From positions 160,005 through 224,004 of IMG/VR virus record IMGVR_UViG_3300041411_000178: DNA of 64,000 nt, one strand, 5' to 3'. The notes under the pieces are model-generated. The model saw nothing but the letters and a program-made list of their open reading frames with translations, had not been told where the DNA came from and did not search any database. How positions within the stretch are numbered: the first letter of the stretch is position 1; every line of letters begins with the position of its first letter. This document shows positions 10,612-48,070 of this stretch, piece by piece. Position numbers and translations under genes: made by a program.

Positions 10612-10666
10612 CCACTTTTTATTAACACTGTGGTACTAATCTAATATACCGTTTGGGAGAATAACG

Positions 10667-11134
10667 ATGTCTAAAGTTGCAGAGCTGGTTATCCGCGAAT
10701 ATCCGATGGAAGTTATTGCCGCTGATACCATGGAAGATCTGTTGGGTCTGTTCGAACAATTGATCCGTTTCGAAGATGCACTCGTTAACCTGGACGTACA
10801 CAAAGATCCTCTCGCTATGGCCACGACCATGGATGAGATCTTGCTTATGGTTGATCGTTGCGCCATGGCTTACATCGGTGATGACCCTGTAGCCTTCCTG
10901 ATGATCGACAAGGGCGAACCTTACGCTATCGGTTCTCTGTTCGTGGCCGAAGAACACCGTGGCCAGGGTATCGGGGAACTGTTGGTCAACATGCTGCGCG
11001 ATTACCACCCCAACAACGACCTCACCGTGAGCTGCCATAAAGGTAACACCCGTGCACTGGCCTTTTACGAGCGCCTGGGTTTCGTGTTCACCGAGACCGA
11101 CCTGATCATGAAAGGTGTGCTCAAAGCAGTTTGA
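10667..11134 (+). CDS. GNAT-family N-acetyltransferase
   Basis: Acetyl-CoA motif LFVAEEHRGQGIG and GNTRALAFYERLGF. Confidence 0.9.
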   Translation: MSKVAELVIREYPMEVIAADTMEDLLGLFEQLIRFEDALVNLDVHKDPLAMATTMDEILLMVDRCAMAYIGDDPVAFLMIDKGEPYAIGSLFVAEEHRGQGIGELLVNMLRDYHPNNDLTVSCHKGNTRALAFYERLGFVFTETDLIMKGVLKAV

Positions 11135-16637: not shown

Positions 16638-17279
16638 ATGGATAACTATAAAGACGGAACGATAGCGTTTGACCGTATTACAGTTTTGGGGAAGGACTTT
16701 GTTGCGGGGACGTACAAGGACGACTTGGCTGTCTATCAATATGCCTTTGATGTTAAGCCGTTTGTAGCAGGCGGGAAGAAAAAGAAGAAGAACGCCCCAG
16801 AGAAGTATGACTATCAATGGGAAGGCTTTTTCAACATGATGGTCAACAATACCCGCATTCGACTGCATCCGGTTCTGAATGACTACGGGTTGTTCGAGAT
16901 GGAAAGAAAGCTTGAGCTGCTCAAAGAGAAGATGCAGTTCTTTGTGAAGGAACTCAAGACACGCCGTAAGACACCTGCTAAGGGCGATCGTTACGACAAG
17001 CAGTGGCTGAACAAACCGGATACCCCTTACTCAGGGCATGTGCACCTGACCATGCACAAGGACGGCGGTGGCAACCTTTCGGTAGCCGACTGTCATAAGT
17101 CCATCCACTGGTGGGTGGACTGTTACTTAGATCCGAGTGGCAAACCCGTCTACGACGAGTACTACGAAAAGTCGTTGAAGTCGATTGAAGAGTTTGCACG
17201 TGGGTTAGGCAAGGCTTGCAAGGCAATCCAAGAATTGCGCAAGTTCTTTGCCCGTGAACTCGAAAGCTCTCAAGGTTAA
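16638..17279 (+). CDS. hypothetical protein (213 aa)
   Basis: AGGAG RBS. Confidence 0.8.
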   Translation: MDNYKDGTIAFDRITVLGKDFVAGTYKDDLAVYQYAFDVKPFVAGGKKKKKNAPEKYDYQWEGFFNMMVNNTRIRLHPVLNDYGLFEMERKLELLKEKMQFFVKELKTRRKTPAKGDRYDKQWLNKPDTPYSGHVHLTMHKDGGGNLSVADCHKSIHWWVDCYLDPSGKPVYDEYYEKSLKSIEEFARGLGKACKAIQELRKFFARELESSQG

Positions 17280-17284
17280 GAGAG

Positions 17285-17301
17285 TTTCAAACCTACATTA
17301 T
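17285..17301 (+). promoter_or_regulatory. putative early promoter motif upstream of the chaperonin
   Basis: TTTCAAACCTACATTAT. Confidence 0.65.
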
Positions 17302-17349
17302 TACCCTGAGATACATTGTTTATATCAACCCAGCTACGGAGATTCTTCC

Positions 17350-19020
17350 ATGTACATGCAACTCTCTAATAACCGCAGTCATGGTGATATGCAGGTCCGC
17401 ACTACTCAAGATGTTGTTGAGGATGTAATGACCAACGTCCATGACGCGGTGGTTGCCACCATGGGTCCTAACGGCAAGCTTTCAGCCATTACTATCGGTA
17501 CCTCGGTGAAGGTTACCAAAGACGGTGTAACAGTCGCAAAGTCGCTGAAGTTTGTTAACCCATTCGAAGAAGCTGTAAACCGCATCATTCTGGAACCGGC
17601 AATCAAGACCGATGACGAATGCGGTGACGGTACCACCACCACCATTCTGTTGACCGGTGAACTGTACAGCCTGTACTCGCAGTTCCCTACTTACCGTGAA
17701 CGCAAGTTCATCGACAAGCTGTGCAACAAAACGATCGAAGAACTCAGCCGTATGTCGATCGCTGTGAACAACGACAGTCCAGAGTTGTACAGTCTGGCCC
17801 TGACGTCCTCTAACGGCGATGAGAAGCTGGCTGACGTCATTACCGACATCTATCACCAGGCTGCCGGTAAATACCCTGAGATCGAGCTCAAGGAAGGTCT
17901 GGGCGGGCAAGACCAGGTTGTGCGTTCCAACGGTCTGCCGGTGAACCTGATCTACAGCAACCCGTCGTTCTCCAAGAACGGCAACGGTACTGCGTCGGAA
18001 TTCACGCTCTTCGTCCCAATCGTTATCGATGACAACATCCGTAACGTAGATCCGCAGGTGCTGATCGGTCTGCTGAAAAAGGTAATGGACAGCGTTGGCA
18101 GCGAAGCTACCTTCCTGCTCATTGCTCGTTCGTTCGACAACCCGATCAACAGCCTGATCCTGCAACTGAACAACCAACTGAAACGTCAGGCGTTCATCTG
18201 CGCACAGACCAACTTCGGTGGTTCGGTTGGTACGCTGTTGATGCAGGACCTCTCGATCATGCTGGGCACCAGTATGGTTAAGGTGTTCTCGGACATCGTG
18301 ACCGTCGAACCGCGTTTTTGCGTCGACAAGCTGACCATTGGTTCCACCCGGTCGGTATTCGAAGCGACTTCCCTCGAGACCACTGACCGTATTGCCGCAC
18401 AGGTGAAATCGATCGAAGAAGAACTTAACAGCTACGAGCGTGGTGAGCGTTTCAGCATGCGTGCGCGTTTCAATGAGAAACGTCTGCGTGATCTGAAGGG
18501 CGAACTGATCACCATCTTCGTGGGCGGTGAAACTCAGTCCGAGATCAAGGAACGTATCGACCGTTTCGAAGACGTGTCGAAGGCTGTCAAATCAGCACTG
18601 GTGAACGGCATCCTGCCGGGTGTAGGTACTGCACTGATCACCGCTGGTGTGTTCGCCATGCAAAGTCTGGAAGATGAAATCGATACCGATCCTGTCTACG
18701 ACAAGATCATCAAGGCTTTCATCGAAGTGATCTTTGCACAGTACACCCTCCTGATGGGTCCTCTGATGTCGTTCAAGGGTACCGCCGAAGAAAAGGCTAC
18801 ACTCATGGAAGGTGTCTTGGACATGGACAACCCTGCACCGTTCACTGTTATGAACATGCGGGATAACACCACCGGTACTCCTCGTGACCTGGGGATCTAC
18901 GACACGGCTTACGCCTCTATCACTGCATTGCGTGGTGGCATGCAGACAGCCAAGATCCTCGCCAGCCTCGATAGCATCTTGATCGGGGACAAACTGGCTG
19001 CGGTTCATATCCAGTCTTAA
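17350..19020 (+). CDS. groEL: phage GroEL-like chaperonin (556 aa)
   Basis: TMGPNG, VTKDGVTVAK, DECGDGTTTT (ATP-binding), GGETQSEIKERIDRFED and GILPGVG; start set at ATG 17350 after GGAG; no GGM tail. Confidence 0.93.
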   Translation: MYMQLSNNRSHGDMQVRTTQDVVEDVMTNVHDAVVATMGPNGKLSAITIGTSVKVTKDGVTVAKSLKFVNPFEEAVNRIILEPAIKTDDECGDGTTTTILLTGELYSLYSQFPTYRERKFIDKLCNKTIEELSRMSIAVNNDSPELYSLALTSSNGDEKLADVITDIYHQAAGKYPEIELKEGLGGQDQVVRSNGLPVNLIYSNPSFSKNGNGTASEFTLFVPIVIDDNIRNVDPQVLIGLLKKVMDSVGSEATFLLIARSFDNPINSLILQLNNQLKRQAFICAQTNFGGSVGTLLMQDLSIMLGTSMVKVFSDIVTVEPRFCVDKLTIGSTRSVFEATSLETTDRIAAQVKSIEEELNSYERGERFSMRARFNEKRLRDLKGELITIFVGGETQSEIKERIDRFEDVSKAVKSALVNGILPGVGTALITAGVFAMQSLEDEIDTDPVYDKIIKAFIEVIFAQYTLLMGPLMSFKGTAEEKATLMEGVLDMDNPAPFTVMNMRDNTTGTPRDLGIYDTAYASITALRGGMQTAKILASLDSILIGDKLAAVHIQS

Positions 19021-21602: not shown

Positions 21603-23183
21603 ATGAATACCCCAATAAACAAAGAGGCCACTTACATGCCCGGGCCTGTTGGTAAAACCTTCACCGAAGAAGAGATGCTGAAAATAAACCCCCATGTCAG
21701 CAAGCTCGCGCCCAACCTCATGGACGGTTATGTTTTCGTTTGGAACAAAGAGCGCGACCTGTACGAGAACATCGGGACTAAGGCTTCAGTGTTGGGGAGT
21801 AACACCCCACATGAATACATTTGCCCTGTTTCTTTTACCATGAAAGGGAATTGGGAAAGTGATGACCCACTTCCTGAGGAAGACGCACAGGTCGGTGATT
21901 GCTGGATCCGGGAAAAACACTTCTGGGCAAGAACTTCCCAGAATATTTGGAAAGACTACGGGGATGTCAGTAACGTAGGTGCTATCCAGTACTGCTTCCT
22001 GGAAGACAACCCACCACCGGCACCAAAGCCTGTGATTTTCCGCAACGTTGGTAACCACGAACTTACAGCCACCATCATCGGTGATTTCGTCAACCGTGAG
22101 ATCGCCGATGCACATGCTCCCAAAGTTGGCCACGCAGGGGAAGCATATATTGCCGACAACACGGTCTTTCTTTGGGATGTATTTAACGGGACAGGTTGGA
22201 TAGAAAGCGGTAAAGTTGGGGAAATTTGGGAACCGCTTCCTCCGCCTACATCGGGACTTGCTGAACTTTTCAGAACCCTGCCGCGTTCCAGTATGTTAGG
22301 TCATGACCGTCACAAGGATCAACGCTCCAAAGAGCAAATCCTGCAAAGCCATTTCCATGATGATGTCAGAGCCGGGTACGGTGGGACCTTCGATCAATGG
22401 TGCAGTCAGAACGGTGATCTTAATGCCGTTCTTCGCGAAGCGGCTGGCAAAGACCCACAAGGTCTTGAACACCTGGTAGCCGTGCACAATCTCGAAGAGC
22501 AGCGGGTGCGTATGCACCGCCGTGACCTGTTGGCAGACGCCAAGGCTCATCCATCCCTGGACGATGCTGAGAAACTGCTGGCAGGGGCTCTGGAGACGCT
22601 TGAGGGCGAAGAAAGTGATGCTGCTTTCAAGGCTCTCGATGCGTTGAAGAAAGTCAAGAAAGATATGCGTCGTAAGCGTCGTAACTTCTGGCTTTTTGTC
22701 ATCACGTTCTGGGCTATCGTGGGTACGGGTGTTTACTTCCTGGGTAAGTGGTTGTCTACCCAGGTTGTTACCGGTCGCTATACCGTTCCAAAGACGTGCT
22801 CGGCTCCATTCGGCCCCGGCGTTATTCAGGGCATGCGTTACTACGACTACAGCTACAAGTCGTTGTTCGGTGTGCACATGACACTGGAGAGTACTGTCAG
22901 GGAAAGCACGATCGTTACCACGAACGGCCAAGAGTTCTCCATCTTCGGTCTATCGCCTCGTAACGAAGAGTCTGACGTACCCGGAGAGCCGATGGCTGAT
23001 CGAGTGCTGAAGGCTGCTGAGGTGGAAGTAGAAACTGCTCCTAAGCCTCCTAAGGGCAAATGGTGGCGCATGAACATCTGGACCAGCGACAAAGGCACAC
23101 AGCCAATGAAGCCAGCCGAGCTGTATTTGTTCGCGTCTGAGAAGTATACAACCATGGTCGCTTATAAGGACTTCTGTAAATGA
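21603..23183 (+). CDS. single-pass membrane protein (526 aa) with N-terminal tail-fibre-like repeat modules
   Basis: AAGGAG RBS before ATG 21603; RRKRRN then hydrophobic FWLFVITFWAIVGTGVYFLG. Confidence 0.85.
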   Translation: MNTPINKEATYMPGPVGKTFTEEEMLKINPHVSKLAPNLMDGYVFVWNKERDLYENIGTKASVLGSNTPHEYICPVSFTMKGNWESDDPLPEEDAQVGDCWIREKHFWARTSQNIWKDYGDVSNVGAIQYCFLEDNPPPAPKPVIFRNVGNHELTATIIGDFVNREIADAHAPKVGHAGEAYIADNTVFLWDVFNGTGWIESGKVGEIWEPLPPPTSGLAELFRTLPRSSMLGHDRHKDQRSKEQILQSHFHDDVRAGYGGTFDQWCSQNGDLNAVLREAAGKDPQGLEHLVAVHNLEEQRVRMHRRDLLADAKAHPSLDDAEKLLAGALETLEGEESDAAFKALDALKKVKKDMRRKRRNFWLFVITFWAIVGTGVYFLGKWLSTQVVTGRYTVPKTCSAPFGPGVIQGMRYYDYSYKSLFGVHMTLESTVRESTIVTTNGQEFSIFGLSPRNEESDVPGEPMADRVLKAAEVEVETAPKPPKGKWWRMNIWTSDKGTQPMKPAELYLFASEKYTTMVAYKDFCK

Positions 23184-23791
23184 AAAGCATCAAGCATGTA
23201 AACGTAGGGACTGTGGGTCATGTTGACCACGGCCGCATGTTGCAGTACACCGGCAAACGTGGGTACAAAAGCATGGTGGAGAATTATCCCTCCGGCATAC
23301 CGTACCTTACGCGTCGTGTAAATCCATTCGAACCAGAGTGGATCTACTGGTGGGAAGGGTTGATCTACGTGGGCGGTCGGGTTATTCATAACCTGCGCAT
23401 CTACGAAGACAAGAAACCACCTGAAGAAGGAGTGATCTGCGATTCGATCTCTCCGACTGAGGGTCGTTCAAAGGAATACGAGCAGATAAAGAAGATGCTC
23501 GTTTCCAGGATGAACAAAGGTACCTCGGGCAAAGCAATGCCGCCTGAGATTACCTCGGCGATCGAGGACTTCCTCCGACCGACCGGGGTAAAGGTTAACC
23601 CAATACGGATCATGCACGAGTATGAGCGTGACCGTCGTACGGTTATTCCGTCACGTAAGTCGATTCAGTGGGCCATTGAAATGACTCACTGGAAAGACAA
23701 AGATCTTTTCAAAATCCTGGGTATGGATCAACTGTCCCCAGATCAATTAGCTGACCTAAGGTGGAAACGTACAAATGGACAATCGTCTTAA
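23180..23791 (+). CDS. hypothetical protein with an N-terminal EF-Tu G1 (P-loop)-like segment
   Basis: ATGA coupling; residues 6-19 HVNVGTVGHVDHGR versus EF-Tu HVNVGTIGHVDHGK; no other GTPase motifs. Confidence 0.8.
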   Translation: MKSIKHVNVGTVGHVDHGRMLQYTGKRGYKSMVENYPSGIPYLTRRVNPFEPEWIYWWEGLIYVGGRVIHNLRIYEDKKPPEEGVICDSISPTEGRSKEYEQIKKMLVSRMNKGTSGKAMPPEITSAIEDFLRPTGVKVNPIRIMHEYERDRRTVIPSRKSIQWAIEMTHWKDKDLFKILGMDQLSPDQLADLRWKRTNGQSS

Positions 23792-23963
23792 GGAAGAGAT
23801 GGAACACAACATCGCCTTGTACAAGGAGAACGGCCCTAACCCAGGCGATCGCTTTGCCAAAGTGCAAGGTATCGGGTTAGTGGTAATGAAATCCAAAACA
23901 CTGCCTTCGGGCTTGATCATTGAACCTTTTGAAAACGTAAGGAACGAACATGGGCCAGAGTAA
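23775..23963 (+). CDS. small hypothetical protein (62 aa)
   Basis: Overlaps both neighbours in the operon. Confidence 0.6.
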   Translation: MDNRLKEEMEHNIALYKENGPNPGDRFAKVQGIGLVVMKSKTLPSGLIIEPFENVRNEHGPE

Positions 23964-29404: not shown

Positions 29405-30310
29405 TTACAGAACGAGTTCGAAAAGAGGACGCCAGCCGTGGCTGGGGTGAGTCGCGGCAGTTGTCAGGCTGACGTTCAGTGCGTCAGGGTTAGTACCACT
29501 GCCGCGGTTAATACAAACGTTGTTTTGCAGATCGGTGGAGAAGGTGATCCAGCTACCATTGATCAGATCATCCACGGATTTAATCCCCAGCGCCTCTGGA
29601 AAGCTACGGATCTGGAACGCGTATGGAAGGATAAGGTCGTACTCGCCCCCAATCTGATCTGCCGCAACCGCGCTGGTGCTCGACATCACCGCACGAGACG
29701 TTGGTACCCGCATGATGAGCTGGTGATCGCCTTTATTAACTGTCTTGGCCTGTGCGATGGTACCAAAGGTAGTCTTGGCATACGGTGCCCAGTCAGCACT
29801 TGGGAAGTTACCGTAGATAACGCCCGCGCGATACAACAATTCCCAGTTAATGTTAGAGTACAGCGCCTGGCTTGCGATAAAGAGGATTTTTCCTTTATAC
29901 ACAAACTTCAGCCACCCCAAGTCAGCGGCCGTGTTCTCAGTGTTTCCCGCTACGATAGTGCCGACAAAGTTTTTGCACTCTTGAGTACTGAACAGGTCAG
30001 ACATCGGCATTTTGCCAAAGTACCCGAAGTTCCAGTCGCCCCGCAACAGCGCTTGAGGACCAGGACCGGTATAAGGCATGTAAGCCAATACCTTGTTAGG
30101 CGTCAACGCTACTTCAGTGCCCTTGCGAGAGGCCACACGATAGTAGTACACCTGGTTACGCACAGCGGTGTTATCGGTGTAGGTCAATGTCCCGCCCGGA
30201 ACTACCGCTAACGATGCAGGGAGCGCGGCGTCAGCGATAGGTGTGACTGAGCGATAGATCGTGTAATCGTCCGCCGAGTTAGGGTCGGACCAATCAATTT
30301 TGATGGGCAT
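29405..30310 (-). CDS. tail-associated paralogue 5: FN3-like N-domain plus WxPVLEL-type domain
   Basis: PGPQALLRGDWNFGYFG, WLKFVYKGKILFIA, LYRAGVIYG and GWRPLFEL; resembles the phiKZ gp131-135-type family. Confidence 0.8.
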   Translation of the reverse strand: MPIKIDWSDPNSADDYTIYRSVTPIADAALPASLAVVPGGTLTYTDNTAVRNQVYYYRVASRKGTEVALTPNKVLAYMPYTGPGPQALLRGDWNFGYFGKMPMSDLFSTQECKNFVGTIVAGNTENTAADLGWLKFVYKGKILFIASQALYSNINWELLYRAGVIYGNFPSADWAPYAKTTFGTIAQAKTVNKGDHQLIMRVPTSRAVMSSTSAVAADQIGGEYDLILPYAFQIRSFPEALGIKSVDDLINGSWITFSTDLQNNVCINRGSGTNPDALNVSLTTAATHPSHGWRPLFELVL

Positions 30311-30321
30311 TTAACCCTCCG

Positions 30322-31266
30322 TTAAGCAGGAATTAATTCAAGAACAGGGACCCAAGAAATCCAGGCCCCAGCGGCAGAACCGGTAATCGCACGACCGAAG
30401 ACGTCAGACCAGTTAGAGTTACTGACCGACATGTTGCTAGTTCCACTGAAGTGCTGAGTGGCCATTAGTGGATAAGGAACACCAGAGGCGTCGCCCCACT
30501 TGAATGGCTGTAGCAGCGGGACGTCGGCGGCCAGGATTGCGGTGGTCATGGAGCACATCAACTCACACCACTCACTGCCTTTAAAGGTTGTGCGGTCCGG
30601 AACGTTTTGATCGGTTGGCAACGTACTGTTCTTGGGGATACGAACCAAGAAGCTATCGCTACCCACAGTGACAACCTTTTTCTGGTTGACCAAGGTGTTA
30701 ATGGCAGGCTGAGCACCCACAGCGGTAAGGTTAAACGGAGCAGCCCCAGGACCGTCGACACCATAAACTAAACCGGCGTTGTAGATCTGAGACCAGGTAG
30801 CCCCACCCTGCGCTGTAAAGGGTGCGTTAGGGAAGAACAGGATCTTTCCCTTAAACACGAACTTGTACCAACCTGTCATGGTGCCATCAGCAGGCGCACC
30901 GCCAATAGATGGAGAGCCAACGGCCGCACGTAAACCGGATATGGTGAACATCTGAGCGGCAGGAATGAAGCCCATGTAACCAGCATTCCAATCACCACGT
31001 AGTACCGTGTTGTTACCGGGACCCGTTTTGGAGAAGTTGCCGTACTGCATGCACTGGCTGTATTGTGTGGTAGCTCCGGCCTTCACTGCTTCCAGCATGT
31101 AGTAACGGACGCTTCTGTCTGGGACAGTAGTGTCCGTATACGTCACATCCGAAGCACCCAGCGTTACGGTGTTAGCAGGAAGCGTGTTCCAGGTGAATGG
31201 TGAGTCTGACCAGTACAGCGTCAGGGAGTCAACAGACATTGGAGACCAATCGATTTTGATAGACAT
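30322..31266 (-). CDS. tail-associated paralogue 4
   Basis: GPGNNTVLRGDWNAGYMG, WYKFVFKGKILF, YNAGLVYG and SWVPVLEL. Confidence 0.8.
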   Translation of the reverse strand: MSIKIDWSPMSVDSLTLYWSDSPFTWNTLPANTVTLGASDVTYTDTTVPDRSVRYYMLEAVKAGATTQYSQCMQYGNFSKTGPGNNTVLRGDWNAGYMGFIPAAQMFTISGLRAAVGSPSIGGAPADGTMTGWYKFVFKGKILFFPNAPFTAQGGATWSQIYNAGLVYGVDGPGAAPFNLTAVGAQPAINTLVNQKKVVTVGSDSFLVRIPKNSTLPTDQNVPDRTTFKGSEWCELMCSMTTAILAADVPLLQPFKWGDASGVPYPLMATQHFSGTSNMSVSNSNWSDVFGRAITGSAAGAWISWVPVLELIPA

Positions 31267-31275
31267 GGAATCCCC

Positions 31276-32220
31276 TTAGACTTCAATCAGCTCCAGCACA
31301 GGCCACCAGCCGTAGTTCAGGCCGTTCCAAGTAGCGGCGTTACGGTTGGCAATGCCGGTACGGTTAGCAGCAGTGTTTCCGCGAACAAGGTTGTTGGCAG
31401 TGTTACCCGCTGCAACACGTTCTTGAACAATGCTGCCGGTGGTAACACCTGTGGACGCCATGTACAGATCTGCGACCGTGGCTTGTTGAACGTTGGCCAT
31501 ACGCTGTAGATCGGGGCAATACATGGAAAGCGGGTACGCCAGGTCGTTCCACTCATTTGGCCACAGTTCGGTTGGTTCGGTTGCGGCAGGAGTACCAGGA
31601 TAGCGGACCAAGGTGTCATCAAAGCCCGTCATGCAGCGTACACGGAACTGTTCGCCACCGATAGTTACCTTGGCACTCTGATTAACGTTAGCGCCGGCGT
31701 TGGAAGGTCCTGGACCGTCTACGCCGTATACTAACCCGAGGTCATAAAGCACTTTCCAGCTGAGACTGCCACACAGCGGGCCGTTAGGAACGTACAGAAC
31801 CTTGCCATTACGGATCCACTTATGCCAGATAGGACCTTGTTGGTTGACCACTCCAACGGTGAGACCAACTGCTGTACGAAGATCGTTGGTATTGATCAGT
31901 TCGCCAGAAGACATCGAACCGAAATAGCCGTAAGAGAAGTCACCGATCTGGATAGTAGTGGGCCCAGGGCCTTTCCGTGGTACAGCACGGATAGGGATGT
32001 TTGGAGTGCTTTGTTTGTCGGCACCCACGATGGTTTCAATCACGTAGTAATACAACGTGTCACGAACCGTAGTGGTATCGGTATAGGTGTTTTCACCCGC
32101 CGAGAGAGTGGCGATTGGGTTAGCGAGGTTAGCCCGATCGAGCGGAGCAGTCCCGCGATAGATTTTCGTTACGAACGTTCCTGGAGCACCCAGGTTAGTC
32201 CAGTTTAATACTGTATCCAT
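31276..32220 (-). CDS. tail-associated paralogue 3
   Basis: GPGPTTIQIGDFSYGYFG, WHKWIRNGKVLY, LYDLGLVYG and GWWPVLEL. Confidence 0.8.
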   Translation of the reverse strand: MDTVLNWTNLGAPGTFVTKIYRGTAPLDRANLANPIATLSAGENTYTDTTTVRDTLYYYVIETIVGADKQSTPNIPIRAVPRKGPGPTTIQIGDFSYGYFGSMSSGELINTNDLRTAVGLTVGVVNQQGPIWHKWIRNGKVLYVPNGPLCGSLSWKVLYDLGLVYGVDGPGPSNAGANVNQSAKVTIGGEQFRVRCMTGFDDTLVRYPGTPAATEPTELWPNEWNDLAYPLSMYCPDLQRMANVQQATVADLYMASTGVTTGSIVQERVAAGNTANNLVRGNTAANRTGIANRNAATWNGLNYGWWPVLELIEV

Positions 32221-32231
32221 TGTTCAATTCC

Positions 32232-33245
32232 TTAGGCGACGTATGAGCCAGTAATTGTGAATGCTTTAAGCGTTGGGCTTTCGTTTGTCCCCCTGACCCC
32301 GGCCGCTCTCATGGCCTGGCCAGAAAAGCTATACTGAACCTGAGGAAGCTGATAGGCCCAATTCTTCTGTCGTACGTTCTGCGCTCTCTGAGCGACCGTA
32401 ACGCCTGTCCATTGACGGACGTCCGTAATGACAGGGGCAAATGGACCGGGTGTTCTGTAAAGTAGTTGATAGGGATCTTTGGCTTCTGTGTCCGGAATAA
32501 GTTCTAGGACGGGTCTCCAGAAGTGTTGGTTAAAGCTGCCTGATATACGGTCAGTCTTGAGGGCGACTCGATACGCGCCCATGATCTGTCCGCTACCGCC
32601 ATCACCGCGGATGATCGTCTGGTTGACGTTAGTGGAAACCGTCTCCATTACAATCGAATCAGGACTTGAGTTAGTCCAGCCCAGAGGAGCGTAACCGAAG
32701 GTTGCAAATTTGGGAGTGATACCTCCATCTGTTGCAACACTACAACGACCTAGCAGTTGGCTCCACTCACCGGCATGAATGTTGGTACTGCCGCTGTTGG
32801 TAACGGGGTCAACATCGTAACCTTTGACCAGTCGAGGTTTGAGCACCCACAGCTTCTCTCCCTCGTACTTCGGCATCTGAATAAACTGATGCTTAGGTGT
32901 GGCGAGAGGATACTTGCCGTTATCCCGAGTGCCGTATACCAAACCAGCCGCATACAGATCCGCCCACGAAATATTGGTCCGGAAAGGTCGCTTGGCAATA
33001 TAGATGATCTTGCCATTCCAGATAAACTTTAACCAGTGGTTAGCACCCTGAGTAAGCCCGCTATTGTCATCACCCTGGTACAGCCCGGCAGCACCTGCTA
33101 CTTGAGAAATGCCAAACAACTGTGTGTCTGTTACTTCGCCAAAGTAACCCAAGGTCTCATCACCGCCAATCAGCGCCTTAGGACCAGGCCCTGAGTTGTT
33201 GATGTAAATCGTTTTACCCCCCGTAGAGAGTAGTGCTTCATTCAT
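32232..33245 (-). CDS. tail-associated paralogue 2
   Basis: Start moved to ATG 33245 (MNEALLST) after GAGGTG, paralleling MNEAMLAT of the upstream gene; PGPKALIGGDETLGYFG...FWRPVLEL. Confidence 0.8.
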   Translation of the reverse strand: MNEALLSTGGKTIYINNSGPGPKALIGGDETLGYFGEVTDTQLFGISQVAGAAGLYQGDDNSGLTQGANHWLKFIWNGKIIYIAKRPFRTNISWADLYAAGLVYGTRDNGKYPLATPKHQFIQMPKYEGEKLWVLKPRLVKGYDVDPVTNSGSTNIHAGEWSQLLGRCSVATDGGITPKFATFGYAPLGWTNSSPDSIVMETVSTNVNQTIIRGDGGSGQIMGAYRVALKTDRISGSFNQHFWRPVLELIPDTEAKDPYQLLYRTPGPFAPVITDVRQWTGVTVAQRAQNVRQKNWAYQLPQVQYSFSGQAMRAAGVRGTNESPTLKAFTITGSYVA

Positions 33246-33257
33246 AACGTTCACCTC

Positions 33258-33285
33258 TGGCATACAAACCTCCCCGGAGGGAGGT
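33258..33285 (-). terminator. intra-operon hairpin with a TTGTATGCC tail
   Basis: Minus strand ACCTCCC-TCCG-GGGAGGT then TTGTATGCCAG. Confidence 0.5.
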
Positions 33286-33300
33286 GAGTATGTTTAACAG

Positions 33301-34560
33301 TTAAGGTGCTGGTCCGATAAGCTCTAGTACCGGTCTCCAGCCGTAGCCACCGTGTGTGGATCCCGGAGCCTGATACCAAAGTCCGTTGAAGCCAGGATAC
33401 CCGCGAGTCAATGGTCCGTTACCAGCCCAGTGTTCTTGGCAAAGTGTGAGCTCGCCGTTACCAGTACTGTTGTTCCAATAAACATCTGCGTTGCTGTAGT
33501 TGGCCCACCGATCATTAGCCGAGCCCTGATAGTTAACGGTCACACGAGCAAAGTACGCATCGTATTCACCGCCAGCAGCGCTCGCTGGATCCGGACCGTT
33601 ACCGCCCGTCATGAGACGGACCTTATAAAGGTTCCCGGCGATCTCGATGGTCTTGGTGCCTTTAGCAGCACCCATGGCATCGAGCGTCTCCCACAACACG
33701 GCTGTGCGCATTGGCTTCATCGCGATGTAGAACGTTTTACCGTTATCAATAAACTTCAACCAGCTTGGATTATCGTCTGGCGGTGTAATGCCGGTGATAC
33801 CCAGTTCTGTTGCTAAAGCGTTGGCCGTGATGAGATCCGCACCTGCTACCTCACCTTTAAACGGACTCGGTGGAATGCTGGACTTCTTAACCAGCATCGG
33901 TCTCCAGCCGTAATACGTTTGCGGGTTGTTAGCCGGCATGTTCCAGATACCCATGATCGGGTGGTTACCGCTGGAGTTCTGCCAGTCGTTGCCGCGCAAG
34001 CAAAAACCGTTGGCGAGCTGCTCTGCACAGATGGTAAAAACACCATCACTCAGGTCAGTACCGCCAGGAGCACCAAGACCCAGCATTGTCCGGGTGTAAT
34101 CACCCCAGATAGGTGCTGACTCGATACCTACACGATCCGTGTTGTCGTATATCGCATACATGTAACGGTTCCAGTTACCGCCGGCGTTTGAAGGCACAGA
34201 GGAACCTGAAGGAGAGATTGCACCGGTCATTAACTGACAGATGTAAACTTCGCCTTGAATCGTTACTTCTTTTGCACCACCATTGGTAGCAGCGGCAATG
34301 GCTTCGTAAGTGGTGGCGTAACGAATAGGCTTCTTAGCAATGTACAGCTCAAGCCCACTCTCTTCAATGAAATGTAACCAACCACCGTCGACGTTCATTG
34401 GAGCGCCGGTGTCCAGTCCAACCAGTCCAGCCAGCGTATCCCCGTAAGTAAAGTCTGCCGACTTCGTTATTCCTTTAAACGGAGTCCCCTCTGGGAAAGG
34501 GATGTCAGAGTTGTCATTGGCTCCTGTCTTATATGCCGTTGCAAGCATCGCTTCATTCAT
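33301..34560 (-). CDS. tail-associated paralogue 1 (two tandem WRP-type domains)
   Basis: Two copies of P-F-KG...WLxFI...YIAxKPxR...YxxxLMTG...GWRP(M/V)L. Confidence 0.8.
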   Translation of the reverse strand: MNEAMLATAYKTGANDNSDIPFPEGTPFKGITKSADFTYGDTLAGLVGLDTGAPMNVDGGWLHFIEESGLELYIAKKPIRYATTYEAIAAATNGGAKEVTIQGEVYICQLMTGAISPSGSSVPSNAGGNWNRYMYAIYDNTDRVGIESAPIWGDYTRTMLGLGAPGGTDLSDGVFTICAEQLANGFCLRGNDWQNSSGNHPIMGIWNMPANNPQTYYGWRPMLVKKSSIPPSPFKGEVAGADLITANALATELGITGITPPDDNPSWLKFIDNGKTFYIAMKPMRTAVLWETLDAMGAAKGTKTIEIAGNLYKVRLMTGGNGPDPASAAGGEYDAYFARVTVNYQGSANDRWANYSNADVYWNNSTGNGELTLCQEHWAGNGPLTRGYPGFNGLWYQAPGSTHGGYGWRPVLELIGPAP

Positions 34561-34576
34561 TTCACGATCCTTTAAT

Positions 34577-34620
34577 GAAAAAGTAACACAAGGAACCTCC
34601 CCGAAAGGAGGCCCCTGTGT
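34577..34620 (-). terminator. intrinsic terminator/attenuator after the tail-fibre gene
   Basis: Minus strand CACAGGGGCCTCC-TTTCG-GGGAGGTTCCTTGTG then TTACTTTTTC. Confidence 0.6.
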
Positions 34621-34627
34621 TCAGCGG

Positions 34628-37600
34628 TTAAGGTACTACCGCACCCGAAGCGCCAACCCACTCAACACCGTCCCAGAAGAACGTGAGGATGGTACGGCTA
34701 CCGGTCAGGCTTGGAGGAGCACCTGTGTTCCAGACCAGCACAGTAGCGCCAGTTGGAGCAAAGGTGATTGCCCCGGCAGCACCGTTGACTTTCACCACCA
34801 GGGTTTGAGCCCGAGCCGGAGCTTTAGGACCATCACCGAGGGTAATCGTCTTGGCGGTTGCACCAGTGTTGTTGACAATCAATGTACCAGTGGTCAGTGG
34901 ATCTACCGAGCCCGTAGCTGCGAGTGTCTGAATCGACAGATCGTAGCGGTTGAACTCGATCCACTGCGTGCCTTTGTAAACGTACGTTTTACCGTCGTTC
35001 GCAGGACCCGAGATGCCAGGAGTAGGTGCGGTGTAAACCACCCACGTCTTGTCACCTTTACGCAGGTACAGGTTGGTGTCCGCTGGGACATCAGCAAAAC
35101 CAGGTACGAATGCAGTGATCTGCGCCTGGATCTTGCCGAAGGCCGTGAGGACCGTGTCAGCAGCAGTGATAGCACCACCGGTGGCAAAGCTGATACCCGC
35201 CAGCGGAGTAGACCGTGTACGAGCCGGAGTGTAGTAGAGGTTGGTAGTCCCTTCCACCACCGCATCGGTAGTACCCGGGGAGGCTACCAGACCAACGTAA
35301 ACAGTACCCGACCAGCGGAACTGAGCATTGGTTGCGAGGGAGATGTAGATCTTCCCTGCTTCACCAGTTGCTGGGAAAGCCGCTTGGTTAGCAAACTCCA
35401 CCACGTCATCAACGTAGCTCGGCAGTTGACCTGCCGGAACGGTACCGTTAACCAGCGTTGCAACCGTCTGGCCCAGTGCTGCGAGAGGAACACCACCCAG
35501 GCTACCGATCGTAGGGGCATTGTACGCACCCCAGGAACCGACGTCCTGACCGTTGAGACGCACACGCATGTACGGCTGGTTGTCAGCAGGTGGTTCGTCG
35601 AACTGAGGAGGAAACTCCAGCTCTACCCACTCGCCTTCGTTGGTTTCGCTACCTTCAACCAGTTGGCGAACGTAAACCTTACCAGCAATCATGGCAGGGG
35701 CTTCATCAACCGGCAGCATGACCCACTCGTTGCCGAGACGGACTACTTTACCAGCAGACAGTTCTGGCGAGTTAACATCACCCGCAACCAGTTGACCCCA
35801 GTACACCCAACCCGACACAGCCGACTTGTAGTAAACCTTGAAGCTGTCGGAAACAGCCCAGTCACCCACGTTACCGGTAAAGCCAGCGCTTGGAGCATCC
35901 ACACCAGCAGGCAGAGTAATCCAGGACGAACCTTTCTCACCCTTGTCACCTTTCTTGCCGATACCGACAGGACCAGGAACACCCTGGATACCCTGAGGAC
36001 CGCGAACCAGACCGATGTCGATCCACTCACCGCCGTTAGCGGTAGTCCAGATGGCCAGGTTGTTACCAACCAGATAACCATCACCCAGCGAACCGGTAGG
36101 GACCGCAGTTTCCAGCGCAGCCAGCGTTGGGTAAGCACCCAGGATGTTGATCGAGGTACCTGCTTCACCCTTCTCACCATCGTTACCCTGAGGACCAGGC
36201 AGACCCGTGATGTCGTACGGACCATCCCACTCACCATCGGTCAAGACATACAGCATCTTGTCGTTGGAAGTGAACCAGCCGTCGCCTTCTTCAGAGTTAG
36301 CCGGCAGAGGCAGATAGGTAGGGCCTGCAACAGTACCACGCAGCTTCAGACCGATACCTTGGATACCACGCTCACCAGGAGCGCCCACTGGACCGCAATC
36401 GACCCACACGCCGCCCAGAGAGATCTGGAGGTGCTTGTCCAGGTCAACGTAGGCTTTACCGCCGTTGAGGAGTGGATCAGGTACGTTGGCATCTTCAGCG
36501 GTCAGGATCTTGATGATCGTGATCGAGGAACCGTTGGCGCCCGGAGCACCGTCGCTACCGTCTTCACCTTTGAACTGACCCAGATTCACCCATGCAGCAC
36601 CGATGTGGGCATACAGAGTGTTGGTATCACGGACAGCGTAGACGTCCTGTTCTTCCGGAGAGGCCGGCAGGGAGCCGTAAGTGGATACCGAACCCTTGAT
36701 GATGATGTTGGTACCGTTAGTACCGTTGGTACCTACCAGGCTGGAAAGGAACTCGAGTTCCGAACCACTGTGGCCGTTATCCAGCCAGAGCTGGTAAGTC
36801 GATTGACCACGGAAAGGACCCACGTCCACCCAAACAGCATCAGTGAGGATGTGCAGGTGACCGTCGTCAGCAGTGACGTAACCGTCTTGCTCTTCTGGGT
36901 TTTGGATATTGCCCAGTTGAGGAGCGTTAGCCACGGTGCCTTTAACGGTGAGGTTCTTACCACGAGGACCTTCAGGACCTGGCACAGTGGACTTCAACGA
37001 AAGCAACCACTGTTGCAGGGTGCCGCCGTAGCCGTCTTCAACAGCCAGATCGTAAGCCGACAGACCACCTACCGAGCCGAGGTCAACGTATTGCTCAGCG
37101 TCAGTCACCCAAACGTACAGGTGGCTACCGACGTACCAGGCTTCAGTTGCAACACCTGGGGTTGGCAGCAGCGCTTCGGTATCTTTGGCACCCATCACTT
37201 CGAAAGGCGAACGAGGAGGACCTTCAGGACCTGGGTCACCAGGAGTGGTCGACTTCAGGGAAGCAACGAACTCGGCTTCAGTACCGGTGTTACCGATGTT
37301 CAGCCAGGATTGATAAGCGGACTTACCTACCAGGCTGGCCAGCCATTGTGCCTGAGTACCCGCGAAGCCGTCAGCCTGAGCAACCTGGAACGCCGACTTA
37401 CCTTCTGGACCTTCCAGACCAATCGAACTCCAGACTGGATCAGCATCAGGATCGCTACCGTCACCACCCGGTACCAGCAACCAAAGGTCGCTCTTCCAGA
37501 TATACGCGTCACCGATCGATACAGCGTTAACCGGAGGAAGTGCTTGTGCATCGGGCCAGGTACCCAAAAGGGTCACACCGCGGTCGCCCAACAGGGAACC

Positions 37601-38377
37601 CGAGTCGGACCAATCCACACCGTTCCAGACACGCAGGGAGCCGGTCACGAAGTAAGCGGTACCTTCAGCCAGGCCTTCGGTAGGAATAGCGTCCAGTTCG
37701 GCTTGGCTGTTCAGCGTACCGATAACCTTAACCGAACCCACAGAACCGGCAGCGCCTTTAAGGCTCAGCAGGAAGTCCGCCTCGGTACCGGTGTTACCCT
37801 GATCCAACCAGATCTGGTAAGTGCTCTTGCCGACCAGGCTGGTCAGCCACTGGGATTGGTTACCCTGGAAACCACCGTCTTGAGCGATTTCGAAAGCCGA
37901 CTTGCCCGCATCGCCTTTCAGGCCGATGGTGACCCAGCCGTCAGGCTGAGGGATGAGCAGCCAGATGTCGCTCTTCCAGATGTAGGCATCACCCACTTCA
38001 TTCAGCGTGTGATCCGGGAGCGGCTGGTTATCGGGCCAGGTGCCGAGCAGGGTAATACCCCGTGGACCCAGCAGTAGACCAGAGCTGATCCATTCGGTCA
38101 GGTTCCAGACAACCAGCGAACCTTCAACGAAGTAGGCGTCGCCTTTGGCGAGGTCTTCAGTTGGCAGTGCGTCCAGATCGGTCTGGGAAATGTTGCCGAT
38201 CACATTCAGACCGCCAACTACCAGAGCCTGGAATTGATCGAGCAGATAACGGGTACGGTTCGCCAGCAGAATTGCTGCACGGTTATCCGGACCATCCGGA
38301 CCACCACGGACCGGTTCCCCTGTTTCAATAAGGGGGATGTCTTCGGGAAATTCACTTACTTCTTCAATGTTAGCCAT
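34628..38377 (-). CDS. long tail fibre protein with collagen-like G-X-Y stretches (1249 aa)
   Basis: N-terminal ETGEPVRGGPDG...LANRTRYL attachment-type motif; many GPxGxxG runs; repeated GKSAYQxWL and LP...GDAY...W modules; PxDxxxYxR motifs near the C-terminus. Confidence 0.88.
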   Translation of the reverse strand: MANIEEVSEFPEDIPLIETGEPVRGGPDGPDNRAAILLANRTRYLLDQFQALVVGGLNVIGNISQTDLDALPTEDLAKGDAYFVEGSLVVWNLTEWISSGLLLGPRGITLLGTWPDNQPLPDHTLNEVGDAYIWKSDIWLLIPQPDGWVTIGLKGDAGKSAFEIAQDGGFQGNQSQWLTSLVGKSTYQIWLDQGNTGTEADFLLSLKGAAGSVGSVKVIGTLNSQAELDAIPTEGLAEGTAYFVTGSLRVWNGVDWSDSGSLLGDRGVTLLGTWPDAQALPPVNAVSIGDAYIWKSDLWLLVPGGDGSDPDADPVWSSIGLEGPEGKSAFQVAQADGFAGTQAQWLASLVGKSAYQSWLNIGNTGTEAEFVASLKSTTPGDPGPEGPPRSPFEVMGAKDTEALLPTPGVATEAWYVGSHLYVWVTDAEQYVDLGSVGGLSAYDLAVEDGYGGTLQQWLLSLKSTVPGPEGPRGKNLTVKGTVANAPQLGNIQNPEEQDGYVTADDGHLHILTDAVWVDVGPFRGQSTYQLWLDNGHSGSELEFLSSLVGTNGTNGTNIIIKGSVSTYGSLPASPEEQDVYAVRDTNTLYAHIGAAWVNLGQFKGEDGSDGAPGANGSSITIIKILTAEDANVPDPLLNGGKAYVDLDKHLQISLGGVWVDCGPVGAPGERGIQGIGLKLRGTVAGPTYLPLPANSEEGDGWFTSNDKMLYVLTDGEWDGPYDITGLPGPQGNDGEKGEAGTSINILGAYPTLAALETAVPTGSLGDGYLVGNNLAIWTTANGGEWIDIGLVRGPQGIQGVPGPVGIGKKGDKGEKGSSWITLPAGVDAPSAGFTGNVGDWAVSDSFKVYYKSAVSGWVYWGQLVAGDVNSPELSAGKVVRLGNEWVMLPVDEAPAMIAGKVYVRQLVEGSETNEGEWVELEFPPQFDEPPADNQPYMRVRLNGQDVGSWGAYNAPTIGSLGGVPLAALGQTVATLVNGTVPAGQLPSYVDDVVEFANQAAFPATGEAGKIYISLATNAQFRWSGTVYVGLVASPGTTDAVVEGTTNLYYTPARTRSTPLAGISFATGGAITAADTVLTAFGKIQAQITAFVPGFADVPADTNLYLRKGDKTWVVYTAPTPGISGPANDGKTYVYKGTQWIEFNRYDLSIQTLAATGSVDPLTTGTLIVNNTGATAKTITLGDGPKAPARAQTLVVKVNGAAGAITFAPTGATVLVWNTGAPPSLTGSRTILTFFWDGVEWVGASGAVVP

Positions 38378-45185: not shown

Positions 45186-48029
45186 TTAGAAAAGGGAAAG
45201 AACGCTGTTGGTCAGTTTAAGCGGTCGCCCGGTTGGTTCTTCGCTGATATCGAGACACTCTTCACCCGTTACGTTAGCAAACGCCACGTGACCGTCCATA
45301 CGACCCATCAGAGCATCCACCTGTTCTTTACTCCAGGCCAAGATGTCCAGACTGCGTGTGGTGATGTTGAGTTTGTCGCCTGTGTCCATGTCGAGCATCC
45401 GGAAGAAGCATTGAGATGCATCCTGTCCGGTACGCCAGATACGACCTTTTACTTGTCGCAGTTCATGTTCCCGGAATGGGGAATCCAGCCCGATGATTTG
45501 GTTGGCCATTAGCAACGGATAACCTTCTTTCAAGCTGTTATACACAGCCACCAGTGGGTTGGTCCGTTCGTCATCGGCAAACTGCTTGATGGTTGGCTCA
45601 CGATCACTGCTGTTCTCACCGAACACCGATACAGGCTTGTAACCCTGAGCGGTTAAGTAATCAACCGACAGTTTCAAGGCTTCAACGTAAGAGGTAAAGA
45701 TGACTGTCTTCTTCTCTACGTCGTCGATGTACTTAGGCAGTTCAGCATGTTCGATCAGCGACTTGATCGCATTGATTCGAGCACGACCCAGTACGTTACC
45801 CAATGCTTCACCACGGATCTTTAATGCCAGGTACTTAACAGCCGATTTCACGTTACGGAACTCAGCCAACTCTGGGCCTTTCAAACCACGCTCGATATCC
45901 TCCTCTACAGCCTTACAGAAGGCGCTGTCAGCAGCGTCCGTAAAGTTGTTGTACCCTTGGGTGCGGAACCGATTAACGATCGCCTTGTAGCGCTGTAGCG
46001 CGGCCAGCTCTTTAGGGTGCTTGAGAACGGTGTATTCATAGCGTTGAACCACATCGTTATAGAACACGATGAACTCTGCCATGTGTGCATTGTAGAAACG
46101 AACCCGCTCCACGATGTACGTCTGCATTGCCAAACGAATGGCTTCCAAGGTGTATTGTTCCCCATTGGGGATTTTAACCTTGATGATTTCAAACGGAGGA
46201 GGGTCCCCCATACCGGCCAGTTCAGGGATTGAGAACTTACCACGACCAATGCGGTTAGCCAACAGCGAGATCAGCGCAGGGCGGTTACGACCATAGCTCG
46301 CCATGAAGAACTCTCTGGCGTACTTGTCGAAGTGTTTGTCGATGATGCAGGTGATGGGATAGATCTCGCTCCCAAGTGCCTTCAGCGGTGTCCCAGACAT
46401 CGGTAGAGACTCTTCGAACAACCCGTCATCCGCCAGTTCTACCAAGCGACGTGTCTGCTTAGACTTCATGTCGCTGAAGTTGTGAGACTCGTCGACAATC
46501 AGGTTGAACTGTTTCTTGTTGCGCTTCTTGGCTTCGTTGAACCATTTACGCAAGTGGTCGTAGTGATTACCCTGGAGGAACTCGTAGTGGATGACGTAGT
46601 AGTCGTAATCGTCAGTCAACAAGCGACCCGACGTAGACGTCCACACACGAGGAGGTTCTTTGAACTTGCCCTTAAAGGTACCAAGCCAAACTTCCTCCAC
46701 GAGGTTCAGAGGGCAGATGATAATGCACTTGTTATCGTTCACCAACATCGACCACATTAGCGACGTTAGCGTGTTGTGGGTTACGATCCAGTTATCAACA
46801 ATGTAGAGGTGATCTTCACTGTCAATACTGATGCACGCTGTTTCGATCTGAGGCTGTTGCTGGATGGCGACTAGCTTCAGCTTGAGTTTCATGAACTGAG
46901 TAACGTCGAGGATATCACCCAACGACAGGTTCACCAAACTGTCCACCAACCAGACCATATCACGGTGTTTGAAGTCCACCTTGAACATGTTCCCGAAAGC
47001 TTCCAGCGAAGCGATGCCACCCAGACTCCACATTAGCTTCTGGAAGTTGCTTGCGCCGTAAAGGTTGTCCATGACTGCGCAGACGCCGAACTCCGATACA
47101 TGGCAGGCTGACAGTTCGATCATGTGCTTGGCAATCTGCCGACGATCGACGTAGGAAAGTTCTGTCACTGGGTCAGCCATATGTATACCGGCACTCAGCA
47201 ACTTGGTGGCGATCTCCAACAGGTCCAGTTCAGAGGGTTCTACTTCCTCACCCACATCACCCACCAAAGGGATGTGGTAACTGAACTGATCGAAGTGGTT
47301 AACGATGTCCTTGGTCGTGGTGACGTACGTCTGACCAACAGCATGACCGTCTTGGTTCACACCAGCTTCTGCCACTTCCCACAAGTGCAGCGGATGGGAG
47401 TCAGCGGTACGACCGTCTTCAAAGGTAAAACGGAAACTCTCTGTTACGCCCTGAGGGAAGTAGCCGGTGATATTGGCAACGTTCCCCTTGGGTCCTATCA
47501 CCTGATCACCTATCTTAAGGTCACCTAGGCGCTTCCAGCCACCGGGTACTTTGACCTGTGTGCTGAGCGGCATTGCCTTACCACTACCCACCGCAGCATC
47601 CAGCAGCAATCCTTTAAGGTGATAGCTTGGGGTGATGATGGGGTATTGCTCCAAGAACTCACGTTGCTTGGGGAACGGTGTGACGTTAAGACGCTCCAGC
47701 TTCTTGAAGTCGAACTGTCTTTTGATGGGATTGACGGTGTCTTTAATCCAGGTTTCAGTTTCCAGCAGGTGTTTTAATTCTGCCAGCTCTCTACGACGGC
47801 TACGGAGGTTACGAACTTTAAGCAGTTCACCCAGGGCAAGGTGTAGTTCCACCAAAAAGAAGTTATGAACCTTGATGGAGTCCCAGGTCTCTCTACGGAT
47901 CTGCCATTTGGTGATCAGTGAGCTGCTGTAGAACTTTTCGATGTCTCGTGCCAGTGCGCCGTATGAAACTCCTGTGATATGTACAAAGACCCCAGTTTGC
48001 TTTACAGCAACTGAAAATAAGTTAAACAT
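45186..48029 (-). CDS. SF2 (SNF2-like) DExH helicase containing an intein (947-aa precursor)
   Basis: Walker A DAAVGSGK|T, LIVDESH, MSGTP, VIFTSY and QVKGRIWRTGQ; start set at ATG 48029. Confidence 0.88.
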   Translation of the reverse strand: MFNLFSVAVKQTGVFVHITGVSYGALARDIEKFYSSSLITKWQIRRETWDSIKVHNFFLVELHLALGELLKVRNLRSRRRELAELKHLLETETWIKDTVNPIKRQFDFKKLERLNVTPFPKQREFLEQYPIITPSYHLKGLLLDAAVGSGKAMPLSTQVKVPGGWKRLGDLKIGDQVIGPKGNVANITGYFPQGVTESFRFTFEDGRTADSHPLHLWEVAEAGVNQDGHAVGQTYVTTTKDIVNHFDQFSYHIPLVGDVGEEVEPSELDLLEIATKLLSAGIHMADPVTELSYVDRRQIAKHMIELSACHVSEFGVCAVMDNLYGASNFQKLMWSLGGIASLEAFGNMFKVDFKHRDMVWLVDSLVNLSLGDILDVTQFMKLKLKLVAIQQQPQIETACISIDSEDHLYIVDNWIVTHNTLTSLMWSMLVNDNKCIIICPLNLVEEVWLGTFKGKFKEPPRVWTSTSGRLLTDDYDYYVIHYEFLQGNHYDHLRKWFNEAKKRNKKQFNLIVDESHNFSDMKSKQTRRLVELADDGLFEESLPMSGTPLKALGSEIYPITCIIDKHFDKYAREFFMASYGRNRPALISLLANRIGRGKFSIPELAGMGDPPPFEIIKVKIPNGEQYTLEAIRLAMQTYIVERVRFYNAHMAEFIVFYNDVVQRYEYTVLKHPKELAALQRYKAIVNRFRTQGYNNFTDAADSAFCKAVEEDIERGLKGPELAEFRNVKSAVKYLALKIRGEALGNVLGRARINAIKSLIEHAELPKYIDDVEKKTVIFTSYVEALKLSVDYLTAQGYKPVSVFGENSSDREPTIKQFADDERTNPLVAVYNSLKEGYPLLMANQIIGLDSPFREHELRQVKGRIWRTGQDASQCFFRMLDMDTGDKLNITTRSLDILAWSKEQVDALMGRMDGHVAFANVTGEECLDISEEPTGRPLKLTNSVLSLF
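46773..47576 (-). mobile_element. class-3 (Ala1, WCT) intein with a degenerate LAGLIDADG domain, 268 aa
   Basis: GK|AMPLSTQVKVPGGWKRLGDLKIGD...HPLHLW...TACISIDSEDHLYIVDNWIVTHN|T. Confidence 0.9.
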
Positions 48030-48070
48030 GAACTGCCTCCGATGGCACCCATTTAAAAAGAGGGAAAGTG

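Follow-up and report, generated by a model that had tools for sequence, protein, structure and literature searches.

An EF-Tu-like peptide in a non-GTPase protein family of EL-like jumbo phages

Introduction

Why would a phage protein that is not a GTPase carry a nearly exact copy of the N-terminal G1 segment of elongation factor Tu (EF-Tu)? The question is raised by a 203-residue protein encoded in a 64,000-nucleotide stretch of DNA (hereafter the window, to which all coordinates refer) from IMG/VR virus record IMGVR_UViG_3300041411_000178, positions 160,005 to 224,004. A preliminary description, made from the sequence of the window, regarded the product of this gene as an orphan protein without GTPase function and as a candidate decoy or mimic of EF-Tu. 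Here, we show that the EF-Tu-like peptide belongs to a translated, position-independent module maintained by strong purifying selection, and we tentatively propose that the module acts as a recognition peptide mimicking host translation factors.

Results

The window protein begins with an EF-Tu peptide followed by an EF-G-like peptide

The gene and the parts of its product are located as follows.

23180–23791, plus strand: coding sequence of the motif protein (ATG start, 203 aa, isoelectric point 9.5), member of a small jumbo-phage family
23195–23236 (residues 6–19), plus strand: motif A, HVNVGTVGHVDHGR, matching EF-Tu residues 11–24 (beta1 strand and P-loop)
23198–23227, plus strand: invariant core of motif A, VNVGTVGH.D
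23231–23254, plus strand: motif B, GRMLQYTG, similar to ERILFYTG, with which helix A of EF-G ends (FusA residues 28–35)
23255–23395, plus strand: conserved body blocks RGY..(D/N)Y....PY.T and NPF.PEWIYWW.GLIYVGGRVIH, common to a syntenic sister family (L054-type)
23624–23767, plus strand: conserved basic C-terminal block ERDRRTVIPSRK.IQWAIEM..WKDKDLFKILGM, helical by low-confidence prediction and matched to no family

The protein starts with MKSIK, directly followed by motif A, which is identical at 12 of 14 positions to residues 11–24 of Escherichia coli TufA (NC_000913.3), HVNVGTIGHVDHGK. The two mismatches are an I-to-V exchange and a K-to-R exchange at the Walker Lys, while the residues in common include N13, G15, T16, G18, H19 and D21 (EF-Tu numbering). 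The back-translated core pattern was found at a single place in the window, and none of 100 shuffles contained it; an EF-Tu hidden Markov model (HMM) compared with the six-frame translation of the window gave a single match, to residues 4–19 of this open reading frame (ORF; E 5.7e-5). These results confirm the near-exact EF-Tu copy reported in the preliminary description, although its designation as a P-loop segment holds only in part: the match is real, but the conserved core comprises the beta1 strand and the first half of the P-loop rather than the whole P-loop. Similarly, the MLQ noted after the motif is present, but it continues as RMLQYTG, an EF-G-like peptide that had been missed. Motif B agrees with the end of EF-G helix A at five of eight positions; in EF-G this peptide follows the P-loop at a distance of about six residues, whereas in the window protein it lies one residue after motif A, and relatives have it ahead of motif A. 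The window protein showed no further EF-G features. PHROGs matches were confined to the motif, Pfam and NCBIfam added nothing beyond EF-Tu matches, PADLOC returned a weak AbiEi match alone (E 0.014), and the ESM Atlas yielded small EF-Tu-fragment clusters only, with scores of at most 0.69.

The window protein is not a GTPase

The likeness to the EF-Tu G domain is limited to the motif A stretch, and the body of the window protein is unrelated to it and lacks G2–G4 as well as domains II and III. A regular-expression scan of the window protein found none of the motifs G1 (GxxxxGK[ST]), G2 (RGITI), G3 (DxxG/DxPGH) or G4 ([NT]KxD); at the G1 position the protein reads GHVDHGRM, the Walker Lys-Thr being replaced by Arg-Met. 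Likewise, G1, DxPGH and [NT]KxD are absent from all 17 aligned homologues. Scores against the relevant models remained far below their cut-offs, with 12.4 bits versus 26.5 for Pfam GTP_EFTU (PF00009; E 0.12) and 16–17.5 bits versus 449–522 for the NCBIfam EF-Tu models, including TIGR00485. We also considered a hidden G domain and rejected it: hhalign comparison with the EF-Tu profile gave a probability of 95.8% with the motif and 0.1% for the body alone (N-terminal 25 residues removed), and alignments of the family profile to the PDB were limited to EF-Tu residues of about 10–26. Moreover, the EF-Tu HMM found no match beyond residues 4–19 to domains II and III or to the rest of the G domain in the six-frame window. 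The absent G1–G4 motifs, the scores below cut-off and the 0.1% for the body thus bear out the earlier view that the protein is not a GTPase, and, judged from its sequence, it probably does not bind GTP or nucleotide.

The module is translated and conserved at the amino-acid level

Contrary to the preliminary description, the protein is not an orphan. We found about 20 homologues (38–100% identity) on soil and wastewater contigs (214–233 kb) that belong to jumbo-phage relatives of Pseudomonas phage EL. A word-indexed search recovered 17 proteins spanning this identity range, mostly on 224–229 kb contigs, and an exhaustive HMM search of 1.84 billion representative proteins added a few members (P0018–P0023). 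Every full-length homologue keeps NVGT[VI]GH.D, and the distant members P0019–P0021 and P0023 retain both motifs. In the alignment of the 17 homologues (A1), V7–H14 and D16 are invariant against a mean column identity of 46%; hence, the motif is kept while the body varies, and the free drift that would have spoken against a function of the peptide is not seen.

At the DNA level, each motif codon is represented by two to four synonymous variants, and pairwise comparisons gave 102 synonymous versus 18 conservative I/V differences. The loci in this codon count were retrieved by the motif pattern, so the ascertainment-free evidence is the protein-level conservation in A1 together with the index-free search. 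The synonymous variation indicates selection on the peptide, not on DNA or RNA, and at the amino-acid level purifying selection on the module is strong.

The preliminary description had allowed for a true start at Met20, which would leave the motif untranslated. However, Met20 is Val in many homologues, and five homologues are extended at the N-terminus by 60 residues; in L003 this extension begins at the same 4-nt ATGA overlap as the window gene. Since the motif is internal in these long forms, it is translated; translation of the window protein from Met1 is supported.

The position of the module and the order of its two peptides vary

Motif A begins at residue 6 in the short forms and at about residue 61 in the long forms, in which the ATGA-coupled start is retained. 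Of the 17 aligned homologues, 16 possess motif B, which comes before motif A or immediately behind it and reads ERVLFYTG, ERILQYTG, ERILYYTG or EKVLYYTG in relatives; among the sequences gathered, its pattern occurs only in proteins that also possess motif A. In the short forms A is directly followed by B, while the reverse order is found with spacings of 7 residues (L006, L077 and P0020), about 35 residues (long forms and P0023) or about 70 residues (L035 and L060). In L041 and L024, motif A lies at the extreme C-terminus, three to four residues before the stop.

A sister family (L054 and P0040–P0045; 208–261 aa) is encoded in the syntenic variable region of related contigs. The N-terminal half of L054-type proteins shares the blocks RGY..DY..N.PY.T and EW..L.VAG.RV with the window family (alignment A5), and the homology of the two families rests on this synteny plus a weak profile match (hhalign E 0.0024 with motif A masked). 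Members of the L054 family have no motif in the N-terminal slot; instead, NVGT[IV]GHI appears about 165 residues in, near the C-terminus; two members carry a second, degenerate copy of the motif. The module is therefore position-independent, occurring N-terminally, internally or near the C-terminus and with both peptide orders.

Similar peptides recur in other phages

When IMG/VR was scanned with the degenerate pattern VNVGT[IV]GH[VIM]D, 76 loci emerged: 28 genuine EF-Tu genes, a few fragments of tuf at the ends of contigs and about 40 non-GTPase ORFs in about 20 sequence clusters. By a rough calculation that uses residue frequencies and the size of the database, about 0.25 such ORFs, well under one, would be expected by chance. 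The Walker Lys is kept in none of the 16 copies on contigs of at least 180 kb, compared with all 28 genuine EF-Tu genes. Across 185,579 bacterial species genomes (one per species), a narrower scan, for the motif plus D-x-G followed by Arg or Ser, found six places, mostly tuf fragments or paralogues.

A second jumbo-phage lineage carrying the peptide comprises the small, 109-aa SPN3US-like proteins (phrog_12626; Erwinia phages ChrisDB, Machina and Huxley, pEa_SNUABM_9 QVW55748.1 and SPN3US gp074), to which GenBank gives the label 'putative elongation factor Tu' or 'GTPase'. Like the window family, they have lost the Walker Lys (H[GS]R) and lack a GTPase body. Unlike in the window family, the motif lies at residue 35 of 109 and the EF-Tu likeness continues through helix alpha1, covering positions 3–38 of the EF-Tu model (E 6e-7). 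Outside the motif we found no relationship between the window protein and this family: the PHROG match covers residues 1–19 only, and hhalign gave 1.2% with the motif masked. In SPN3US (L087, 170595–175774) and pEa_SNUABM_9 (L001), the peptide gene lies between an acetyltransferase gene and a macro-domain gene about 1.2 kb downstream, an arrangement that is conserved. The window has no macro-domain homologue and one distant, weak acetyltransferase-like match (10640–11131, E 3e-4), hence we see no general link to ADP-ribosylation.

Further carriers are lambdoid nin-region ORFs that start with the whole EF-Tu N-terminus, free-standing or fused to the YbcO nuclease. EF-Tu-like N-terminal pieces occur in temperate phages in three contexts (L026:3050–3634, minus strand; L011:1213–1419, plus; L080:2498–2677, plus; L056:3543–5219, minus), the YbcO fusion being one of them; the piece corresponds to about residues 1–26 from Met1, with some substitutions. 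ORFs of 60–77 aa between NinB and RusA/NinG, such as Aaphi23 ORF27 and that of Aggregatibacter phage S1249, carry this N-terminus, and a shorter EF-Tu-like piece, TVNVGTIGHVDNGKTTL, without the Met1 start of EF-Tu, is found at the N-terminus of a Mu-like large terminase. The 239-aa protein CAH9016584.1 of Vibrio phage 150E35-1 (L079:2504–3223, plus strand) combines an EF-Tu-like N-terminus with an intact GxxxxGKS and an isolated G2-like EQERGITIS, and contains no G3 or G4 motif.

Full-length EF-Tu genes with the signature ...TLTAAILAVQ... are present on IMG/VR contigs of 370–533 kb (L007, L009, L039, L053, L055 and L058) as well as on numerous smaller contigs; these may be translation factors that the phages carry, or else host DNA. 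In bacteria, Nocardia aurantiaca NZ_WMBB01000013.1 (L081) contains a tuf-like frame in which the Walker Lys is replaced by Arg and G2–G4 are kept, diverging past the G domain, and Streptomyces sp. NPDC001903 (L086) encodes a 151-aa ORF with the EF-Tu peptide at its end.

The motif gene is coupled to a membrane-protein gene in an EL-like jumbo phage

The immediate upstream context of the motif gene is as follows.

21603–23183, plus strand: upstream partner gene, with an ORF listed from 21528, a likely ATG at 21603 and GGAG just 5' of that ATG
23180–23183, plus strand: ATGA start/stop overlap of the motif gene with the upstream gene; the 4-nt overlap is identical in L003, L027 and L071

The upstream protein has one strongly hydrophobic segment, encoded at about 22680–22750, and homologues of its gene precede the motif gene in related contigs. 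The coupling to a membrane-protein gene noted earlier is thus upheld, as the ATGA overlap is real and kept in three related contigs. Together with the findings above, this identifies the motif protein as an accessory protein, not a GTPase, that is operon-coupled to a membrane protein. Downstream, the last 17 nt of the motif gene are shared with a 62-aa ORF (23775–23963, plus strand). As this ORF is conserved with 52–72% identity in L003, L010, L027 and L071, it probably represents a genuine small gene.

The window belongs to an EL-like jumbo phage from soil, represented by a contig of 224,004 bp. Its helicase (45186–48203, minus strand) shares 55% identity with the helicase of Pseudomonas phage EL, and a GroEL-like chaperonin gene is common to both phages; in the window it lies at 17248–19020 on the plus strand (phrog_5725, E 1.7e-121), about 4 kb upstream of the motif gene. 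DNA identical to the window is present in soil and rhizosphere metagenomes, and no near-identical relative was found among GenBank phages. Wastewater runs labelled "RNA-Seq" contain relatives that are 90–95% identical; we rejected them as evidence of transcription, as the runs are probably DNA.

Two other regions of the window deserve mention. Five tandem paralogous genes (301, 314, 314, 343 and 419 aa; mutual identity 23–35%) occupy 29405–34560 on the minus strand, and related contigs contain similar arrays. At 34502–38377, where the G+C content is higher (0.55–0.57), a 1249-aa minus-strand ORF is opposed along nearly its full length by an antisense 1191-aa plus-strand ORF, which looks like a shadow ORF.

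Discussion

Our preferred explanation, to which we assign a probability of roughly 0.4, is that the window protein is a non-enzymatic accessory protein whose module acts as a recognition peptide mimicking the G1 segment of host translation factors. The N-terminal module derives from translational GTPases, the EF-Tu beta1/P-loop stretch VNVGTVGH.D being fused to an EF-G-type end of helix A, R.L.YTG, and would constitute a short recognition peptide that imitates the N-terminal G1 segment of these host proteins. Its partner may be a factor that recognises this segment in EF-Tu or EF-G as well, and the peptide would then serve as a decoy, a pseudosubstrate or a docking handle. It is conceivable, yet in our judgement doubtful, that the module represents a general phage device, found in jumbo, lambdoid and Mu-like phages, that is, a linear-motif mimic aimed at a host or defence factor reading the EF-Tu G1 segment. 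Candidates for such a factor are an enzyme that modifies the P-loop, a chaperone of nascent EF-Tu and the ribosomal GTPase centre.

Several defence and toxin systems are directed at EF-Tu. Doc phosphorylates it at T382. Lit cleaves it at G59/I60 and a type IV Thoeris caspase at R45/R59 (bioRxiv 2024.10.24.620036), whereas Avs7 binds domains II–III (PMC13581612). These systems show EF-Tu as a recurrent target or cofactor of defence and toxin systems, and none of the four reads EF-Tu residues 11–24; in the window protein, the regions of the Lit, Thoeris and Doc sites are absent. Hence, Lit and Doc, which the preliminary description had put forward in favour of a decoy, do not fit, because their sites lie elsewhere on EF-Tu. 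The sole known EF-Tu-directed activity that maps inside motif A is that of TreTu, a type VI secretion system toxin of Salmonella, which ADP-ribosylates D21, an outward-pointing signature residue of translational GTPases (PMC9825190). This residue is present in the window protein as the family-invariant D16. TreTu requires the GTP form of EF-Tu, and in the modelled TreTu–EF-Tu complex it also docks on helix D (PMC9825190). Given the need for the GTP form and for helix D docking, a bare peptide is unlikely to be a TreTu substrate, which is one of the points that weigh against mimicry.

The other points against it concern the peptide, its variability and its predicted structure. In folded EF-Tu the beta1 strand NVGT[IV]G is buried within the G-domain fold, and since this strand is the best-conserved part of the module, a partner that reads native EF-Tu is hard to picture. 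As EF-Tu is extremely abundant, simple competition by the phage protein is also implausible. In EF-Tu, G18/H19 are anchored to helix C (PMC4286738). The H is replaced by Q or A and the D by E in the 109-aa family, in which SPN3US gp074 lacks GHVDH, and the D is replaced by N or A in the L054 family. Moreover, there was no sign that the motif tracks host EF-Tu variants; a scan for the variant VNIGTIGHVD, uninformative in this respect, returned 20 matches, all of them genuine EF-Tu genes, and no non-GTPase ORF. AlphaFold2 models, built from shallow alignments, had a mean predicted local distance difference test score (pLDDT) of 40.8 for the window family (A1), with about 24 over residues 1–30, and of 54.9 for the 109-aa family (A3), with about 45 at the motif, values too low for either model to be relied on. 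The composition of the flanks (0.56 versus 0.51) gave no clear disorder signal, and no partner for the module was found.

The main rival to recognition by mimicry is that the gene goes back, by capture or descent, to the N-terminus of a translational GTPase and that the beta1-loop-helix unit persists as a nucleus of folding or oligomerisation, a structural relic with no mimicry and no partner shared with EF-Tu. We regard this as a serious but somewhat unlikely alternative. It agrees with the fact that the best-conserved residues form a hydrophobic strand that is core in G domains, that motif B is also a core helix end, that the likeness of the 109-aa family runs through helix alpha1 as in a true beta-loop-alpha unit and that H and D drift in two families; even the helix-then-strand order could pack as strand-then-helix. 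However, a purely structural strand would allow exchanges among V, I and L as well as polar swaps, yet otherwise unrelated families all have the same N, G, T, G and H. A relic is also difficult to reconcile with a motif that moves among homologous proteins as far as the very C-terminus, with the indels that directly border it and with the AlphaFold predictions (again from shallow alignments), which show no domain around it. A different role for the GH.D loop would be to insert into the sarcin-ricin loop or GTPase-associated centre of the 50S subunit, with the basic C-terminal half holding on to rRNA, so that the protein, as a pseudo-GTPase, modulates or shields factor binding in infection. On the ribosome, D21 sits in the sarcin-ricin loop pocket G2655/C2658/G2659 of 23S rRNA (PMC9825190), and the D21A substitution lowers ribosome-stimulated GTPase activity of EF-Tu about 1000-fold (PMC5084732). 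In the window family, H14 and D16 (EF-Tu H19 and D21) are invariant while the nucleotide-binding Lys and Thr are gone, and the window protein is basic. Furthermore, gp014 of the jumbo phage phiKZ, an early protein, binds the 50S subunit/5S rRNA and is likewise an accessory jumbo-phage protein aimed at host translation, but the paper describes no GTPase-like peptide or motif in it (PMC10914614). Docking on the ribosome nevertheless appears improbable to us, given that H and D are not kept in other phage families with the peptide and that binding of the sarcin-ricin loop by factors needs a whole G domain.

The remaining alternatives place the function of the segment in the nucleic acid or deny it any function. 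A piece of tuf could serve recombination or integration (attP), act as an antisense or target site or provide a strong translation-initiation region. Elements of the SXT type rebuild the 5' end of prfC, and such a role would be in keeping with those lambdoid and Mu-like ORFs whose beginning is the complete EF-Tu N-terminus, Met1 included. Nonetheless, synonymous sites vary freely in all families, which contradicts a function at the DNA or RNA level, and in the jumbo phages the motif can be internal or C-terminal, without the EF-Tu start. The lambdoid copies, which are located between NinB and RusA/NinG/Q or form fusions with YbcO or TerL, have no integrase as a neighbour; an attP-type duplication of the tuf 5' end was rejected on account of the missing adjacent integrase and the synonymous divergence. 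We consider a DNA- or RNA-level element very improbable, and we give still less credence to neutral debris, i.e., chance similarity or a recent, functionless tuf fragment. The Pfam match taken alone (E 0.12) would suit the latter, but debris is contradicted by the shuffles, by the invariance of the motif in homologues down to 38% identity despite saturated synonymous change, and by its recurrence in about 40 phage ORFs.

As for annotation, several GenBank records misname small proteins of this kind as 'elongation factor Tu' or 'GTPase'. Mimicry of the G1 segment is open to bench experiments now, since cultivable phages carry the peptide (Erwinia phages ChrisDB and Machina, Aggregatibacter phage Aaphi23 and Vibrio phage 150E35-1, with a degraded copy in Salmonella phage SPN3US). 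Short linear motifs of eukaryotic viruses are host copies of about ten residues that are conserved within fast-evolving proteins and can be relocated; unlike these, the segment copied here is a buried strand in the host protein. To our knowledge, mimicry of this type has not been described for phages or for translation GTPases, and our literature search found no paper describing an EF-Tu peptide in phage proteins. If the proposed mimicry is true, the module would be, as far as the literature searched shows, the first phage linear-motif mimic of a translation factor, and the peptide would be a bait for whatever reads the N-terminal segment of EF-Tu, be it a defence effector, a toxin or a host process.

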